Source: Malacoraja senta
Taxonomy: Eukaryota
DNA: 64,000 bases
Direction of reading: 5' to 3'
Assembly (NCBI GenBank): GCA_038087875.1
Contig: JAXLNO010000844.1
Span: forward strand, 1 to 64,000
Shown in pieces: positions 31-61,337 of this stretch (position 1 is the stretch's first letter; every line of letters begins with the position of its first letter). The notes under the pieces were generated by a model. The model worked only from the letters and a program-made list of their open reading frames with translations, searched no databases and was not told the DNA's origin. Position numbers and translations under genes: made by a program.

Positions 31-82
31 ATGCTTCTTTTTACCTTACTGAACACTTACGGTGTGGCCACTGTCTCCTCTG
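31..82 (+). CDS. MHC class I exon 1, signal peptide (MLLFTLLNTYGVATVSS)
   Basis: ATG at 31, 17 mostly hydrophobic/small codons plus 1 nt, then strong donor G|GTAAGC at 83. The phase-1 junction joins exon 2 in frame (G+AT = Asp). Confidence 0.8.
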
Positions 83-4019: not shown

Positions 4020-4280
4020 ATTTACACCATCTTGCATTTTACTACCTGTTGAACCATGGATTGAATGAGCTGCCTGAGTACAGTATGGTAGCAATGCTGG
4101 ATGACGTCCAGATAGCATATTTTGACAGCACACTAGAGCGGGCTGTTCCCAGACAGCGATGGATGGCCCAGTCTTTCCCGCAGGATCACTGGGATTCAAT
4201 GGCCATCACAGTTGCAGGTTTTCATGGGATTGTCAGAGGAAATGCTGAGATAGTCTACCAACAGCAACATGGTATCTCAA
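4020..4280 (+). CDS. MHC class I exon 2, alpha1 domain (DLHHLAFYYLLNHGLNELPEYSMVAMLDDVQIAYFDSTLERAVPRQRWMAQSFPQDHWDSMAITVAGFHGIVRGNAEIVYQQQHGIS)
   Basis: Acceptor tttatgcattgcAG at 4018-4019, donor GTAAGT at 4281. 261 bp, open frame, class I alpha1 motifs (PEY, LDD.QIAYFDS, PRQRWM, HW). Confidence 0.93.
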
Positions 4281-6025
4281 GTAAGTGTCGTGAGCGGACC
4301 TGGGGTAGACACTCAGTGATGACACAGATGGATTTTGTTTTACTTTTATTGTTGACACATGATTCTCTGATACACTTTTTTTGCATTAGTCAATCACATC
4401 AAAGAAAACTATTCATAAATACAATCAAACCAAACTCGTACAATAGGTAGAGCAAAGAGTGCAGAATGTAGTTCTCAGCATTGTAATGTACCAGTGCCAG
4501 AGACAAAGTCCAGTGTCTACAATGGGGTTGAGGTGAACCCTAGCATAAGGGAGGACTGTTCAGAAACCTGATAACATAGGGGAGGAAACAGTTACTGAGT
4601 CTGGTGGTGCACGCTTTAATGCTTACGTACCTTCTGCAGGAAGAAGGAGTGACCAGAACGGGACAAATCTTTGATTATGTTGTCTGCTTTCCTGAACCAG
4701 TTGAAATACAGATGGATTCACTGGTGGGGAATCATGTTTGTGTGATCGATTGTGCTACATCTCCACCTCTCTGCAATTTCCAGCGGTCTTGGGCAGAACT
4801 CTTTCCAAACTAAGTTGTGATGCAACCTGTCAGTATGCTTTCTATGGCACATTTATAGAAGTTTGTAAGAGTCATTGGAGATGCCGCATTTCCTTAGTCT
4901 CCTGAGGCAGTAGGGGAACCAGAAACTCTCAACCTTTTTCACTTCAGCACCATTGATGCTGTTTCAGACATTTACTCCATAACATTTTGATAGAGACACG
5001 GCCCATCGTCTATATTTAATGTGTCCTAACTGCTGAACACACAGTCATAACAGTTGGCTGGTGATAGTCTCTTTATGGGTTAAGCATTTGATATTCAACA
5101 CCAGTAATAAGTGGATGGATTGGATCATCTGTTTTGTTGGGCTGGAATGAGGGAGAAACCATTAGTTTATTTATAGCCTGATCATCTAGAGATGGGATCT
5201 TGATTTAAGCTGGTTGATGGTGACTATGAGGTATTCCCTCAGTAATAATATTGTGTTAATCCAGCATCCCCTCAATATTGGCAACAATCCTCAGAGGGTG
5301 TAGCAATCCCACACAGTGCAACAGCCTTGATGTACTTCCCATCTGCATTGCCTTAACCTTCAGACTGACCTGTTGGCTCTGTAGCATTGCCCATCTGACA
5401 ATGCACTTCTTCCTCTGTTCTTTATGTACGACAGTGCAGAATCTGAGTTCCACCCTTCTGACACAGCAGAACTCCTTTAGTGTTACATCCGCAACAGTAA
5501 AGCTCCCCCCCCATAACACTTGAGGTTAGTCCATGCCCTCAGTATATAGACCATGGGTCATTGAGTCACACATCATGGAAACCGGCCCTTCTGCTCACTG
5601 AATCCACATTGATCATCCATTGTGCTAAGATGGAGTCACAGCAAACTGCAGATGCTGCCAATCTGAATTTAAAACAAACAGGAGGAACTCAACGAGTCAG
5701 GCAGCATGCTGTGGAAAAATGGACAGAAAACATATGAGACCAGGACCATTTAGAGTGATGGGGTAGAGTGGAGAAAGCTGGAAAAGAAAAGTAGTCTGTG
5801 TAGGATAGTGTTAATATGCGGGGACCACTGGTCGGTGCGGACTCGGTGGGCCGAAGGGCCTGTTTCCGCGCTGTATCTCTGAGCTAAACCTGCTCCTGTG
5901 CTGTACAGCTCCATGTTGTGTTCTGTTATGCCTGTTTGTACCATGCTGAGAACTGATTTGTAAATTGCCTCTCCCTTCCATCCACTCTCCCCAACACAAA
6001 TCCTCCACCCCTACCTCAGCCCCAG

Positions 6026-6301
6026 CTGTTTGCTTTGTGCAGGGTTTCTGCGGCTGTGAAGTGGACAGTGACAATTCCACTGATGGGTTTGTCAGACTGG
6101 GTTATGATGGGGAGGATGCCTGTGCTTTTGACAAGGACAGAATGCACTGGATTGCACTACGTCCAGATTTCCAGATGCTAGCAGATCGGTGGAACGTCAA
6201 CACCTTCATGAACAAGTATTTTAAAGATCTCCTGGAGAAGGACTGTGTGAAGTGGCTGCGGATATATCTGGAGTGTGGACAAGAAGCACTACAGAGGAGA
6301 G
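6026..6301 (+). CDS. MHC class I exon 3, alpha2 domain (TVCFVQGFCGCEVDSDNSTDGFVRLGYDGEDACAFDKDRMHWIALRPDFQMLADRWNVNTFMNKYFKDLLEKDCVKWLRIYLECGQEALQRR)
   Basis: Pyrimidine tract and AG at 6024-6025 (alternative in-frame AG at 6018-6019), donor GTACAC at 6302. 276 bp; canonical C101/C164, GYDGED, W133, W147, W167. Confidence 0.93.
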
Positions 6302-7505: not shown

Positions 7506-7778
7506 AAACCCCTGAGGTGTTTATTGGGATTAAACGTGATGGGTCGCAATCACTGAGACTCTCCTGCCTTGTCACAGGCTTCTAGCCACGGGCCATCGAT
7601 GTAACGTGGCTGAGAGATGGTGAGGGGGTCCATGAGTCTGAATCCAGTGATCTGTTGCCCAATTGGGATGGGACTTACCAGCTGAAGAATACAATTCAAC
7701 TGAATAGAGAAGATGTGGCAAAATTCTCCTGTTACATCGAACATGCAACTCTGCTGCAGGGAGTCAATGTTCCACAGG
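7506..7778 (+). pseudogene. MHC class I exon 4, alpha3 Ig-C1 domain with in-frame TAG at 7583-7585 (ETPEVFIGIKRDGSQSLRLSCLVTGF*PRAIDVTWLRDG...DGTYQLKNTIQL...FSCYIEHATLLQGVNVPQ)
   Basis: Acceptor ttcttacacttgcAG at 7504-7505, donor GTAAGT at 7779. Both Ig cysteines present; GGC TTC TAG CCA replaces the conserved GFYP motif. Confidence 0.9.
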
Positions 7779-13854: not shown

Positions 13855-14876
13855 TCAATACTTTGTAGAACCACCTTTCGCTGCAATTACAGCTGCAAGT
13901 CTTTTGGGGTATATCTCTACCAGCTTTGCACATCTAGAGACTGACATTTTTGCCCATTCTTCTTTGCAAAATAGGTCAAGCTCAGTCAGATTGGATGGAG
14001 AGCATCTGTGAACAGCAATTTTCAAGTCTTGCCAGAGATTCTCAATTGGATTTAGGTCTGGACTTTGACTGGGCCATTCTAACACATGAATACGCTTTGA
14101 TCTAAACCATTCCATTGTAGCTCTGGCTGTATGTTTAGGGTCGTTGTCCTGCTGGAAGGTGAACTTCCGCCCCGGTCTCAAGTCTTTTGCAGACTCTAAC
14201 AGGTTTTCTTCCAAAATTGCCCTGTATTTGGCTCCATCCATCTTCCCCCATCAACTCTGACCAGCTTCCCTGTCCCTGCTGAAGAAAAGCATCCCCACAG
14301 CATAATGCTGCCACCACCATGTTTCACAGTGGGGATGGTGTGTTCAGGGTGATGTGCAGTGTTAGGTTTCCGCCACACATAGCGTTTTGCATTTAAGCCA
14401 AAAACTTCAATTTTGGTCTCATCTGACCAGAGCACCTTCCTCCACATGTTTGCTGTGTCCCCCACATGGCTTGTGGCAAACTGCAAATGGGACTTCTTAT
14501 GGGCTTTTTTCAACAATGGCTTTCTTCTTGCCACTCTTCCATAAAGGCCCGATTTGTGGAGTGCACGACTAATAGTTTTCCTGTGGACAGATTCTCCCAC
14601 CTGAGCTGTGGATCTCTGCAGCTCCTGCAGAGTTACCATGGGCCTCTTGGCTGCTTCTCTGATCAATGCTCTCCTTGCCCGGCCTGTCAGTTTAGGTGGA
14701 CGGCCATGTCTTGGTAGGTTTGCAGTTGTGCCATACTCTTTCCATTTTCGGATGATGGATTGAACAGTGCTCCGTGAGATGTTCAAAGCTTGGGATATTT
14801 ATTTATAACCTAACCCTGTTTTAAACTTCTCCACAACTTTATCCCTGACCTGTCTGGTGTGTTCCTTTGGCTTCAT
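13855..14876 (-). pseudogene. Tc1 DD34E transposase, disrupted by one stop and one +1 frameshift
   Basis: ATG at 14876 (MKPKEHTRQVRDK...), TAA at 14799-14801 in YK*ISQALN, extra G near 14245. Motifs GRPPKL, WSDETK, QQDNDPKH, WPSQSPDLNPIENLW, ending AAKGGSTKY*. Confidence 0.95.
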
Positions 14877-15627: not shown

Positions 15628-15761
15628 AGAGGGCAGTGAAAGAAGATATGAAGATTAGGATCGTGACTGGAGCTGTAATTGTTCCTCTCATTCTCCTGGG
15701 GATCATCCTTGGAATTGGTTGCTGGAAGAAGAGGAAAAAGAGAAAACCTTTCAATGAACAG
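15628..15761 (+). CDS. MHC class I exon 5, connecting peptide/transmembrane/basic tail (ERAVKEDMKIRIVTGAVIVPLILLGIILGIGCWKKRKKRKPFNEQ)
   Basis: AG at 15626-15627 gives a phase-1 in-frame join. About 21 hydrophobic residues followed by WKKRKKRK. Possible donor CAG|GTACCA at 15762; otherwise the frame reads on to TGA at 15846-15848. 3' end uncertain. Confidence 0.75.
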
Positions 15762-16376
15762 GTACCAGCTGACAACAGCAGAGACCAGGAGAGGACCATG
15801 AAGCACAATCAGCTTCCTTTGGGATGCAGAGGAGGTCTACCGGAATGATGCCTGGATTAGTGGGGTATTAGCCACAGGGAGAAGTTGGACAGACTGGACA
15901 GTTGGATTGTTTTCTCTGGAATGTCGGGGATTGAGGGGAGACCTGACAGTAATATATCAAACTGGGAGGAGTAGAGATAGGGTAGACCATCAGACTTTTT
16001 ACCCAGGAAGGAAATATCAAATAAGAGCAGGTATTGCTTTACAATGAGTGGCAAAGTTAAAAAAAGATGTGCAGGACAAGTGTTTTACGCCAAGGGTGGT
16101 GAGTGACTGGAATATGCTGCTGGAGGTGGTGGTGGAAGCAGATATGATAGTGGCATTTAAGAGACTTTTAGATAGGCACATGTATATGCAGGGAATGGAT
16201 GGATATGGATTATGTGCAAGCAGATAACAATTGGTCTTGGCATCATGTTCGGCACAAACATTGTGGGTCAAAGGGCCTGTTCTTGTGCTGTACTGTTCTA
16301 TGCTCTTTATTGTATCAATGCTGACTGATGACTTTACATTCAGCCATTAATTTTTCAAATGCTGTCTTCACTGCAG

Positions 16377-32580: not shown

Positions 32581-33899
32581 TATGACAATAAAACAATATT
32601 GACTCTTGAATGTACATAAAGTATCTTTGGATTCTTCTTTGCCAGAGTTGACAACAAAATTGATAAGTATATTAGGTAATGATAATTGTTGTCTAAGATT
32701 ACAAAATAATGTTGATCAACCGGAAAGGTATGGAGGTGAGGGGATGGGAGGTGAGGGAGGGAAGGAATGCCAGTTGAAATCTAACTCAAACAAGTGTGAT
32801 TTGATGCATTTTGGGAAGTCAAATCATGACTGGCCAAATCTATTGCAGGATTGTAAATGGAGCTGTACCTTGGTGTACAATTACATAGTTCCCTGAAAAT
32901 GGCATCATAGTTTGATAGGGAAGTGAAGGGAATATATGTCTGAAGAATCGCCTCGACCCAAAACGTCACCCATTCCTTCTCTCCAGAAATATTGCCGCTG
33001 AGTCTCTCTAGCTTTTTGTGTCTATCTTCGGTTTAAATTAGCATCTGCTGTTCATTCCTACGCAGAGTATATGTTATGCCTTGTTTCCTCAGCCATGGTA
33101 CTGAGGACTAGGGTTGGGGTGTCATGTTACAGTTGTACAGAATGTTGAACAGGCAACCATTAATCTGTCCAGGGGCTCAGCTGATTTGTTGCACAATAGA
33201 CTCTAATCCAAGGTCTGAACTCTGAAAAGAAAATCAAGAAATTCAAGTTGCCACTCATCCATGGACTGAATAACAAAACACATCTTTGTTTTGCTTATCT
33301 GGCTTGAGAACTCTTAACATTGATCTATTTTCCTTCATAGTGTAGTCCATTTATAAACTGGCCATCCCCAGACATCCTGTGTCCACACTGTTTCCCAAGG
33401 GCACCTCACCTATTTTCAGCTCTGCTCTCAACAAGTATCAATCACATTATCCCTCTCTCTATCTATCATCTCTCTCCATCTCACTATATATATCTCTCTC
33501 TATCTCCCTACCTCTCTCCATCTATTTATCTCTCCATCTCTCATCCCTCAGCTCTATCTCTCTTTCCTTCATCTCTTTCATTTCTGCAAATTGAAATCAT
33601 TAATCAGTCTGAGAGCACTGTGTGTGACTGAATGACATCAGAGCATCAGTCCCTGAGGCATACCACTGGTCACAGGCTTCCTATGTAAAAAAACAACCCT
33701 GCACTACCATTCTCTGACTCCTACCACCAAGCCAACTTTGTGTCCAATTGACTAGCTCACCCTGGATCCCATGTTTTCCAACCTAATGGACCAGCCACCC
33801 ATGTGGGACCTTGCAGAAGGATGGCATGGTGGCATAGTCGTAAGGCTACTGCTTTACAGTGCCAGAGATCTGGGTTCAATCCTGACTACAAGTGCTTTT

Positions 33900-35255
33900 C
33901 TGGCATCCTCCTGGCAAACGACTCAGGTAATTATGTGGTTCTTGTCTTGCTGGACCTATCTGCCGCCTTCGATACAGTGGACCATGGAATATTCATTTCC
34001 AGACTACAGCACCAAGTGGGCATTTGTGGCAGTGCCCTGGAATGGTTCAGGTCCTATCTGGCAGATAGAACCATGCGTGTAAGCCTTGCTGGCTTTGAAT
34101 CCTCCTCCACTCCCTTGGTATATGGGGTTCCACAGGGCTCAATTTTAGGGCCCCTGCTCTTCTCCTTATACCTACTTCCTCTGGGCTCAATTTTAAGAAG
34201 GCATGGCATCTCCTTTCACTTTTATGCAGATGATAGCCAGTTATATATGCCACTCAGGAAAGAAGAAGACTATTCTCTAAAATCACTTCTGTCTTGTCTT
34301 GAGGACATTAAGTCCTGGATGGCCTTAAACTTTCTGGGACTTAATGAAGAGAAGACAGAGGTGATTTTGTTTGGCCCCAATGGCTGCCGTGAACCTCCCT
34401 TTGTTGATTTGGGTCCACTGGCATTGTCTGTAAAGCCAACCGTCTTGAACCTGGGTTTTAGGATGGACGGTGATTTTAAACTAGACAAACAAATAGGCGC
34501 GGTGGTTAAGTCCAGCTTCTTTCACCTAAGGAAGCTGGCAAAGGTGAAGCCCATTCTCGAGCGGGAGCATTTTGAAACAGTAATCCATGCCTTTATTACA
34601 TCTAGGCTGGATTACTGTAACGCATTGGAGTCGCACGAGCTTCATTGGCTCGCCTCCAGCTTGTTCAAAATGCTGCCGCTCGCCTTTTGACTGGAACTCG
34701 AAAGAGGGAGCACATTACGCCAATTTTGGCCTCCCTACACTGGCTCCCAGTGCACTTTCGAGTTCATTTCAAAATTATTTTATTTGTTTTTAAATCCTTG
34801 AATGGGCTCGCCCCGCCTTACCTCTCTGAGCTGCTCCACCTATATGCTCCTGCCCGGTGCCTCAGGTCAGCTGATCAGCTGCTCCTTGAGGTACCAAGGT
34901 CTAAGCGGAAGCTCAGAGGGGATAGAGCTTTTTCTGTTGCTGCTCCGGCACTCTGGAACACCTTGCCGCTGCACATCAGACAGGCCCCCTCACTGTCCAT
35001 CTTCAAATCCTCCCTAAAAACATATTTTTATTCTTTGGCTTTCGACACTGGCTGAGGCATTGCCCCTGTTTTTAGTGCTTTTAATGTCTTTTAATTTTTA
35101 GTGTGTTTTTTATAGTCCTTCGTTTTACGGTTTGTAATGGTTTTTAATTGTTTGTAATAGCTTTTTGTTCGTGATTTCTCATGTACAGCACTTTGTGGCA
35201 ACTGTGGTTGTTTAAAGTGCTTTATAAATAAAGTTATTATAAAGTTATTATTATT
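33900..35255 (+). mobile_element. 5'-truncated L2 LINE (RT C-half plus 3' UTR) inserted into an HE1 SINE (head 33826-33899, body 35256-35490)
   Basis: LDLSAAFDTVDH, GVPQGSILGP, YADDSQLY, SRLDYCN, LQLVQNAAARLL, LHWLPV. One frameshift near 34625; (TTA)n tail. Confidence 0.92.
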
Positions 35256-47900: not shown

Positions 47901-49794
47901 TATTCTATGGTATATGGACACACTGATCTGATCTGATCTGCATTTATGCCAACAATATTCTGTTGCGCTGCAACAAGCAAGAATTTCATTGTCCTATCTG
48001 GGTCAGCCCATGATCATATTGAATAGCGTTGCAGGCTCGAAGGGCCGAATGGCCTACTCCTGCACCTATTTTCTATGTTTCTATGACAATAAACTCTCTT
48101 CTTGACTTCTTGTTAGTGGGGAAGTGCCGGTCCTTCTGGGCATTGATGCATGCCGCGTCATGAACTTAGTCTCCTTCGGCAAAACTGTGTACCAGCTGTC
48201 TACCTCTCAAAGTCCCACCCAACAACTATTCAAATAATACAAAGACATTTGTGATAACCAGCTGGGCAAGATTCCCACAGAATACAGCATTGTAACCGAC
48301 AAGGAAGTCATACCTGTCGTTCGTTCTCCTCACTGAATCCCGCACGCAATGAAGGACCGCGTCAAAGCAGAACTTGACAGAATGGAAACACTGGGTGTGA
48401 TAGTCCCTGTCAATGACCCCTCCTCCTGGGTCTCCACCATGGTCACAGCAGTCAAGAAGAACAAAAACGAAATAAGGATTTGTATTAACCCTAAAGACCT
48501 ACACACTGCCATCAAATGACCACACCACGCGATGCGGACGGTGGAAGAGGTCGCAGCCAGCTACAGTTTTCTCTGTCCTAGATGCAAAGAACTCATTTTG
48601 GCAAATACCGCTCGACCATGCATCCTCCATGTTAACCACATTTGCAATGCCCTACGGATGCTGCCGATTCTTACAAATGCCATTTGGCATCAATTTAGCC
48701 AGTGTAGTTTTCCAATGTACTATGGAACAACTCTTTACTGGCTACCCGTGCACCATAATCATGGATGACATCCTGATCGCCGGGCGCAACAGGTCCTGGA
48801 TTGTGCCAGATAAGTCAATCTCAAACTCAACCCCCTCAAGTGCAGGTTTCGGGTCAAGGAAGTGACTTATGTGGGTCACGTGTTTACCAACAACGGACTC
48901 AGGCCAGACCCATCTAAAACCATTGCCATCAACGAAATGGCAGCACCTATGGGTGGGATGTGACTGCTCTACAACGATTTCTAGGCACGGTAAACTACCT
49001 GGGAAAATTAATCCCAAACTTCAGCGAGCTGTCTGCCCCACTGTGACAACTGACCCACAATCATACACACTGGTCCTGGCACCAGCACCTGCACCAGCAT
49101 TTGAAACCTGCAAACAACTAATGTCTTGCGCTCCAACCCTCACATACTTTGATGCCGAGTTACCCGTTACCCTCACGAGTGATGCCTCCCAGTATGGACT
49201 GGGCAGCACTTGCCTACAAGACGACGGGAAGGGTCACAGACCAGTTGCCTATGTCTCCCGCACCATGACCGACACTGAACAGCGCTACGTTCAAACTGGG
49301 AAGGAGCTACTCGCAGCAACTTTTGCCTGCAAGAAATTCAAGGAGTTTATCTTTGGCAACCCGATCACAGTTGAAACCGATCACCAGCCCCGTGTCAGTA
49401 TCCTCAGTAAACGGCACACGGCACCAGCGAGTTTACAACGCATAATGATGGAACTACAGAGGTATGGCATCAGACTAACCTACAAATGCGGTAAGGACAT
49501 GCACTTAGCTGACACCCTCTCATGGGCACCTCACCCAACCTGCGAAAACCACCTGTCTGATGATAAGCAAGAGGGGTACATGGTTATGATGGTCTCTTGC
49601 CTTCCATCTGTGGACTTAGACATCCTAGTGGCACAAACAGCTGCAGACGAAACGCTACAATCGCTGGTCACTACGGCTGGCCAGACAATCAGCACCACCG
49701 GCCGCAGGCTGCCCACCCATTCTACCCTGTCCGCAATGAACTGGTCATTCAAGATGGCATTATAATGAAAGGACATAAGGCAGTTATCCTAAAA

Positions 49795-60318: not shown

Positions 60319-60365
60319 GCTGATGTGGTGGTGGAAGGGGGGATAGGAAGAAGAAAGGAAGAGTC

Positions 60366-61337
60366 CAGTGAGGTGGAGAGGTTCGGCGGTCACGTTGAGG
60401 CGGTGAGGTTCGGTGGTCACCTTGAGGCAGCGAGCCCCAGTGAGGCAGAGAGATTCGTCAGTCCCAGTGAGATGGCGAGGCCCGGTGAGGTGGAGAGGTT
60501 CAGCGGTCCCGGTGATTTTATGAGTCCTGGTGAGGCAGAGAGCTTTGGCAGTCCCGGTGAGGCGACGAGGTCCGGAGAGGCGGCGAGGTACGGCGGTCCC
60601 GGTGAGGCGGAGAGGTTCGCCGGTCACGGTGAGGTGGCGAGGCCCGGTGAGACGGAGAGATTCAGCTGTCCCTGTGAGATGGCGAGGGCCAGTGAGGTGG
60701 AGAGGTACGGCGGTCCCGGTGAAGCGGCGAGGTACGGTGGGCCCGGTGAGGCAGCGAGGCCCAGTGAGGTGGAGAGCTTTGGCAGTCCTGGTGAGGCGGA
60801 GCGTTTCGACAGTCCCGGTGAGGCGGCGAGGTACAGTGTGGCGGAGCGATACAGCGGTCACGGTGAGGTGACGATGTCCAGTGAGGCGGCGAGGGTCGGC
60901 GGTCCCGGTGAGGCGAAAATGTTCGGCAATTAGACGGAGAGGTTCGGCGGTGCCGGTGAGGGGGCGAGGCCCAGTGAGGCAGTGAGGCCCGGTGGGTTGG
61001 CGAGGCCTGGTGACGCGAAAATGTTCGGCAATTAGAAAGACAGGTTCGGCTGTCCCGGTGAGGCCCGGTGAGGTGGAGAGTTTTGGTGGTCCTGGTGAGG
61101 CGGCGTGGCCCGGTGAGGCAACGAAGTTTGGCTGTGAGGCGGAGAGATTAGGTGGTCCCATTGAGCTGACGAAGCCCGGTGAGGCGGTGAGCCCCGGTAA
61201 GGCAGAGAGGATCGGCGGTCCTGGTGAGGCAGCAAGGCCCGGTGAGACGGAGAGGCACGGTGAGGCGGAGAGGTTCGGCGGTCCCGGTGAGGCAGCGAGG
61301 CCCGGAGAGGTGGTGAGGTACGGCTGTACTGGTGAGG
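60366..61337. repeat. GC-rich composite minisatellite of 18-bp and 27-bp units
   Basis: Units GGTGAGGCGGCGAGGCCC and GGTGAGGCGGAGAGGTTCGGCGGTCCC, interspersed. Confidence 0.92.

Follow-up and report, generated by a model that had tools for sequence, protein, structure and literature searches.

The described molecules most relevant to the gene reported here are two shark proteins deposited in the PDB as 'shark nonclassical MHC class I, UGA' (9ch4) and 'shark nonclassical MHC class I, UFA' (8gm8), where MHC stands for major histocompatibility complex. According to a review, both bind lipids, as judged from crystal structures and mass spectrometry that it cites as personal communication (PMC12562908), and UFA is also mentioned in a second publication (PMC10751288). 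Here we analysed a stretch of 64,000 nucleotides from the skate Malacoraja senta (GCA_038087875.1, contig JAXLNO010000844.1, positions 1 to 64,000 of the forward strand), referred to below as the window, in which exon translation showed that positions 4020-6301 carry the exons for alpha1 and alpha2, two of the five exons of an MHC class I-like gene on the plus strand. We consider it likely that this gene comes from an old shark and ray lineage that is sister to UGA, that the intact members of this lineage hold a hydrophobic ligand, and that the copy in the window has recently been disabled. An earlier note on the same DNA had described these two exons as a divergent non-classical class I gene with a CD1-like groove, possibly outside the described lineages, and its interpretation is, overall, partly supported by the analyses below.

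The protein closest to the window gene is P0001 (XP_055486430.1) from Leucoraja erinacea, with 92% identity over alpha1-alpha3. A full-length protein search with P0001 as query retrieved annotated relatives in 11 other elasmobranch species, at 53-72% identity to the query, beyond which the scores fall sharply. One gene each was found in Pristis, Mobula, Hypanus, Heptranchias, Scyliorhinus, Stegostoma, Hemiscyllium, Mustelus, Cetorhinus and Chiloscyllium, while Pristiophorus contributed one full-length protein together with a second, partial entry. The resulting lineage set comprised 13 sequences. All of the relatives carry the NCBI name 'MR1-like', and no published name for the lineage was found in the literature; in the supplement of PMC10751288 the genes are labelled only 'MHC-Ib'. 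No lineage protein of the thorny skate, Amblyraja radiata, was among the matches to P0001, although the UGA orthologue of this species is annotated; the thorny skate may have lost the lineage gene, or its copy may lack an annotation.

The 13 lineage sequences grouped into one clade with support of 100/100 when 46 sequences were analysed carefully with IQ-TREE, and within it the batoids (99/97) split from the sharks, matching the species tree. This clade was sister (98/88) to a clade of proteins 60-76% identical to 9ch4, the UGA-like proteins having been found by matching short 9ch4 stretches from HMMER output. The classical UAA clade (100/99), which holds the polymorphic class I of Triakis with its kin, and a multicopy Ib clade restricted to sharks were both separate from the lineage. 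The earlier note had named such a phylogeny as a check, and its outcome agrees with the non-classical character proposed there, as the gene falls in the UGA-sister clade and outside UAA. The suggestion of a lineage outside those already described fared less evenly: it stood with regard to the UAA and multicopy Ib clades, but the lineage is no novelty for the databases, in which 12 elasmobranch species are represented by about one annotated gene apiece. Trees built from alpha1 only or from alpha2 only kept the lineage and the 9ch4-like clade together, whereas the alpha3 tree did not. Separate origins of alpha1 and alpha2, a possibility raised by MR1 being the best PDB match of alpha2, were rejected because the alpha2-only tree joins the lineage to UGA. 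The best match outside the lineage, P0164, turned out not to be UGA-like. Two cyprinid and loach class I-like proteins, P0229 and P0230 (from Garra and Paramisgurnus), have lost anchors and apolar grooves (mean 0.93-0.95 on the scale described below); they join the UGA-plus-lineage clade weakly (67/61), which may reflect long-branch attraction or a distant teleost counterpart.

Orthology to UGA was rejected, as the two groups form separate sister clades, each with support of 100/100, and Leucoraja and Pristiophorus each have both genes. Because they coexist in the same species, the lineage gene and UGA are paralogues predating the shark-ray split. On the Leucoraja erinacea scaffold JAMYXN010000384.1 about 42 kb separate the lineage gene from a UGA-like gene in the same orientation; given the colinearity described below, the window copy would be expected to have its UGA-like neighbour immediately beyond 64 kb. 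The skate UGA-like gene downstream of the intact paralogue (XP_055486429.1, L002:10001-64817) spans about 55 kb by virtue of very long introns. The lineage resembles UGA in alpha1 (about 55% identical) and shares A123 and L159 with it, but the identity over alpha1-alpha2 is only 37%. UGA keeps Y7, Y59, K146 and N86, has Phe99 and ends in a YQNI tail, as observed in the Amblyraja UGA protein; the skate UGA orthologues used were XP_055521884.1 and XP_032898133.1. The lineage, in contrast, has F7, H59, R146, Cys99 and an N-S-T sequon in alpha2, and lacks both the N86 sequon and a tyrosine motif in the tail. Its groove is also more apolar than that of UGA (1.1-1.4 versus 0.2-0.7).

UFA, which has been called CD1-like, is likewise an elasmobranch MHC-Ib molecule and has the class I fold and a reported lipid-type groove in common with the proposed properties of the lineage. 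However, its match was confined to part of alpha1 (E 2.7e-12), a score that a classical gene of a teleost equals or betters, and 8gm8 was not among the best 60 alpha2 matches listed, all with E about 1e-10 or better. Identity with UFA was ruled out at 30% sequence identity and Z 19.9 to 8gm8. At the tail end, the lineage has a transmembrane segment and a cytoplasmic tail. As judged from these trees and alignments, the lineage is a UGA paralogue older than the shark-ray split, and it is not UGA, UFA, UAA, MR1 or CD1.

Residue numbers were assigned from the landmarks DD29-30, W51, W60, C101, YDG118-120, W133, W147, C164, W167 and Y171, and a structural alignment to H-2Kd (model residues 1-180 against chain residues 2-182) supports this numbering. 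With it, all 23 residues named in the earlier note were reproduced exactly. The peptide-terminus anchor positions read F7, H59, Q84, L143, R146, W147, L159 and Y171, so that only W147 and Y171 (two of eight) are retained. The replacement of Y123 by Ala, the loss of the N86 sequon (QQHGIS) and the gain of an N-S-T sequon in alpha2 were confirmed as well. The anchor pattern is uniform over the 13 lineage members wherever the alignment column is filled, the exception being Leu in place of W147 in three orectolobiform sharks; the F7 column is empty in three truncated gene models. The replacement of six anchors is thus, on this alignment, a trait of the lineage and not a sign of decay. Membership in classical UAA was also rejected, since the lineage keeps two of eight anchors and lies outside the UAA clade, whereas Triakis UAA (P0100) and its kin carry YYRTKWYY. 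UDA reportedly keeps eight of nine peptide-terminus residues, a description that does not suit the lineage with its two of eight; the comparison with UDA is one of anchor counts.

Groove composition was expressed as the mean Kyte-Doolittle value over 43 aligned groove-lining positions in 126 class I family sequences. The lineage scored 1.08-1.44 and fills 13 of the top 14 ranks for apolarity, next to 1.35 for a CD1b-like protein, 0.22-0.66 for UGA-like proteins and about -0.2 to 0.4 for molecules with all eight anchors. These positions are also well conserved: identity within the lineage is 0.84 in the groove, 0.72 at the other alpha1-alpha2 positions and 0.65 in alpha3, and between the lineage and UGA it is 0.48 in the groove and 0.35 elsewhere. 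An unpaired cysteine at position 99 of the groove floor, two residues from Cys101, is invariant in the lineage; UGA has Phe there, and classical molecules have Tyr or another residue.

An AlphaFold (AF2) model of the alpha1-alpha2 platform, covering residues 1-180 of the intact paralogue P0001 (predicted local distance difference test 93.8), shows the expected class I strands and helices. Its top structural match was shark UGA (9ch4), with Z 25.1, a root-mean-square deviation (rmsd) of 1.7 Å and 37% identity. The closest chains of MR1 and classical class I followed (Z 23.5-24.1, rmsd about 1.9 Å), as did chicken YF1*7.1 (3p77 and 9eb3; Z 23.6-23.9), while classical class I representatives in a wide structure search reached Z 20.7-21.5, shark UFA (8gm8) Z 19.9 with 30% identity, and EPCR Z 18.7. 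The CD1 structures, chicken CD1-1 (3jvg; Z 22.3) and human CD1d (6v7y; Z 20.0), are 16-20% identical to the model, and rank below UGA and the closest MR1 and classical chains, about level with the classical representatives.

Most CD1 isoforms carry a YxxPhi endosomal sorting motif, and none was found in any of the tails of the 13 lineage members. The lineage does resemble CD1 in the apolarity of its groove lining and in being non-polymorphic and class I-like, with beta-2-microglobulin pairing that is predicted for the lineage. For the CD1-type Pfam family PF16497, however, lineage members scored 25-33 bits against a cut-off of 35, and a CD1b-like control protein reached 236 bits; for PF00129 (MHC_I) the lineage scores were 84-97 bits. 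The CD1-like groove predicted in the earlier note therefore holds for composition, but not for Pfam family, structural ranking or tail, and CD1 orthology is not supported. Chicken YF1*7.1, which has a classical-like backbone with a hydrophobic groove and binds lipids, may be the better functional analogy, even though it belongs to an unrelated avian lineage and is only 26% identical.

The window gene reaches beyond positions 4020-6301, with a leader exon on the 5' side and exons for alpha3 and for the transmembrane segment and tail on the 3' side. Its features are as follows (a slash marks an exon boundary).

Positions 31-82, plus strand: exon 1, start codon and 17-residue signal peptide, MLLFTLLNTYGVATVSS, with a phase-1 donor (G/gtaagc).
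Positions 4020-4280, plus strand: exon 2, alpha1 domain of 87 codons, phase 1 (tgcattgcag/AT...TCAA/gtaagt), Pfam MHC_I 1.4e-5.
Positions 6020-6301, plus strand: exon 3, alpha2 domain of 94 codons, phase 1 (cctacctcag/CC...AGAG/gtacac), Pfam MHC_I 1.7e-16.
Positions 6073-6081, plus strand: N-S-T glycosylation sequon in alpha2, shared by every one of the 13 lineage members (NTT in Mustelus).
Positions 7506-7778, plus strand: exon 4, alpha3 (immunoglobulin C1-set) domain, Pfam C1-set 6.9e-9.
Positions 7583-7585, plus strand: in-frame TAG in place of the Tyr that is invariant in the GFYP motif of alpha3, read as ...LVTGF*PRAIDVTW.
Positions 15628-15848, plus strand: exon 5, which encodes the connecting peptide, the transmembrane segment and a basic cytoplasmic tail lacking Tyr, together with the stop codon.

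The MHC_I and C1-set domains, the phase-1 layout with one exon per domain and the canonical Cys101-Cys164 pair of exon 3, which carries the additional Cys at position 99, place the gene in the MHC class I superfamily. All of its splice sites are canonical. The best PDB sequence match of exon 2 is 9ch4_A (UGA; E 1.2e-22), the acceptor of exon 3 is identical to that of the paralogue on scaffold JAMYXN010000384.1 (locus L001), and exon 5 matches the C-termini of P0001 and P0151. A generic leader scan of the window (ATG, hydrophobic core, phase-1 donor) gave no credible candidate. The leader was located by way of the sawfish locus, in which a shark-type leader was first placed and then used as query; this sawfish leader exon matches shark leaders, and exon 1 of the window is 94% identical to it in protein and 85% in DNA across 118 bp. 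The codon joining exons 1 and 2 (G+AT) encodes Asp.

The TAG in alpha3 is absent from both other skate copies compared. Since it sits 193 nt upstream of the last exon junction, the mRNA should, by the usual rule, undergo nonsense-mediated decay, and any product of the window copy would lack the membrane anchor and the tail as well as the greater part of alpha3. The stop is the sole departure of the window copy from 95 columns that are invariant in 12 relatives (94 of 95 kept). Compared with the intact copy, the ratio of non-synonymous to synonymous substitution rates is 0.38 in alpha1-alpha2 and 0.78 in alpha3, at a synonymous divergence of 0.07. When the changes were polarised with the sawfish outgroup, the window branch carried 6 synonymous and 8 non-synonymous changes, compared with 5 and 10 for the intact copy, giving no sign of relaxed constraint on the window branch. 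Because constraint is not visibly relaxed, the stop either arose recently or represents a null allele, an error being the less likely option. We conclude that the window copy is probably a dead gene, non-functional unless the base call is wrong, and the disabling break looks recent.

From these results, we propose that an intact member of the lineage would be a membrane glycoprotein with one transmembrane segment, paired with beta-2-microglobulin. The ligand that it would hold is proposed to be hydrophobic, conserved and not a peptide, and to resemble a lipid, as has been reported for UGA and UFA; an innate-like T cell or a natural killer (NK)-type receptor would recognise it. As the tail lacks a tyrosine motif, this ligand would more probably be loaded along the secretory pathway or on the cell surface than in endosomes. 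The lipid-like nature of the ligand is inferred for the lineage as a whole. Several points weigh against this proposal. The lipid claim for UGA and UFA goes back to the personal communication in PMC12562908. Hydrophobicity was calculated from aligned positions and not from a cavity, so that a groove packed shut by bulky residues would give the same numbers. The single-base stop might stem from an assembly error or mark a null allele instead of a fixed pseudogene, and, on the promoter side, the window holds just 30 bases 5' of the start codon.

We also consider, as a far-fetched extension, that the lineage constitutes a third ancient presenter of lipid-type or small-molecule ligands beside UFA and UGA, in which Cys99 could covalently capture a thiol-reactive hydrophobic ligand, by analogy with the use of Lys43 by MR1.

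The most serious competitor to a hydrophobic ligand is a groove closed by apolar packing as in FcRn or HFE, in which case the molecule would bind nothing and would act as a receptor ligand or in another non-presenting role. The bulky groove residues F7, Y9, M63, F70, I73, Y155, F156 and W167 are consistent with such packing, the strong conservation of the groove fits it as well as it fits ligand binding, and the model fits HFE (Z 22.3) and FcRn (Z 21.7) with scores similar to those for CD1. Nevertheless, the small floor residues A26, G69, G97, C99 and A123 leave room, the nearest structure, UGA, reportedly holds lipid, and the groove is better conserved than the rest between UGA and the lineage. 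We regard a closed groove as the less likely reading, and a hydrophobic ligand in the intact members remains the reading we favour.

It is unlikely, in turn, that the window gene is functional and makes a normal surface molecule, with the TAG being an assembly or base-calling error or one null allele. In favour of this, there is one lesion only, every splice site is canonical, 94 of 95 invariant columns are retained, and the ratio of non-synonymous to synonymous changes on its branch is not above that of the intact paralogue. On the other hand, substitution errors are uncommon in long-read assemblies, another decayed copy in skate indicates that birth-and-death turnover is under way, and the NCBI annotation has two other copies but no protein from the window locus. 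A recently disabled copy is thus the preferred interpretation of the stop.

Presentation of a narrow set of hydrophobic peptides in the style of HLA-E or Qa-1 appears very improbable to us. The fold and helix spacing of the model are near those of classical class I and MR1 (Z 23.5-24, rmsd about 1.9 Å), and W147 and Y171 are retained, but six of the eight anchors, on both the N- and the C-terminal side, are gone throughout the lineage, whereas HLA-E-type molecules retain the terminus anchors. Least probable of all is an MR1-type presenter of small metabolites, as the NCBI name suggests, or a true CD1 orthologue: the best PDB sequence matches of the alpha2 exon are indeed MR1 (E about 1e-16) and the groove composition equals that of the CD1b-like protein, yet the Schiff-base Lys43 of MR1 aligns to Ala in skates and rays or to Thr, Ile or Cys in sharks, MR1 representatives are distant in the tree, even the alpha2-only tree joins the lineage to UGA, and the Pfam scores, low identity and tail given above all speak against CD1.

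The state of the window copy was further compared with that of its skate relatives, the window being from Malacoraja senta and both P0001 and P0019 being encoded in the Leucoraja erinacea assembly GCA_028641065.1. The P0001 locus lies on the unplaced scaffold JAMYXN010000384.1 and can be aligned colinearly with the window. The DNA identity between the two is 97.3% in the alpha1 exon, 96.5% in alpha2 and 94.5% in alpha3, and drops to 88-91% across introns and flanking DNA. None of the P0001 exons compared is disrupted. On the basis of the intron and flank identity, we regard the Malacoraja window locus and the Leucoraja P0001 locus as diverged duplicates and not as haplotypes of one locus. A third copy, the source of P0019 on scaffold JAMYXN010000412.1, is 92.9% identical in alpha2 and, with gaps, 92.3% in alpha3, and no alpha1, leader or transmembrane exon was found within 10 kb of it. 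Across the two species, the window copy thus appears to be one of at least three duplicates in skate that have diverged by about 10%, one of them intact and one a fragment.

Both Leucoraja loci have imperfect database models. XP_055486430.1, which NCBI flags as 'partial', omits the leader exon, although a leader is present at L001:100-153, about 9.9 kb upstream of alpha1; it also includes 12 intron-coded residues between alpha2 and alpha3 as the result of a shifted donor site. The copy with alpha2 and alpha3 only (L004:10001-14232, JAMYXN010000412.1) is annotated as the 263-aa protein XP_055486496.1, the N-terminus of which matches none of the exons of the gene.

No second class I gene was detected in the 64-kb window by tblastn with the gene's own exons and UGA-like proteins. 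Outside the gene, the window is repeat-rich and the flanks of the gene are largely mobile-element debris. A Tc1/mariner-type transposase fragment (14196-14786, minus strand; HTH_Tnp_Tc3_2, 5.6e-24) lies within the 7.8-kb intron between alpha3 and the transmembrane exon, and open reading frames were observed for a reverse transcriptase of a long interspersed nuclear element (33803-34690, plus strand; RVT_1, 3.6e-20) and for the RNase H of a long terminal repeat element (48869-49765, plus strand; 9.5e-27). A GC-rich minisatellite at 60365-61317 (unit about 45 bp, higher-order periods 72-162 bp) explains a local GC peak (0.53) and a strong GC skew.

By itself the window adds little, being a broken duplicate from a lineage that is annotated in a dozen species already. 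Its main use lies in the complete gene model, including the leader exon that is missing from the NCBI model of the paralogue, and it also provides evidence of gene duplication and decay in skate; the more modest point is that a gene that is single-copy elsewhere is duplicating and decaying in skate. Lipid-type presentation in cartilaginous fish is a recent discovery, made through UFA and UGA, and bears on the age of CD1-like presentation. If our proposal is true, the lineage described here would be a third conserved one, a sister of UGA with a more apolar and more conserved groove, and hence a natural target for follow-up.

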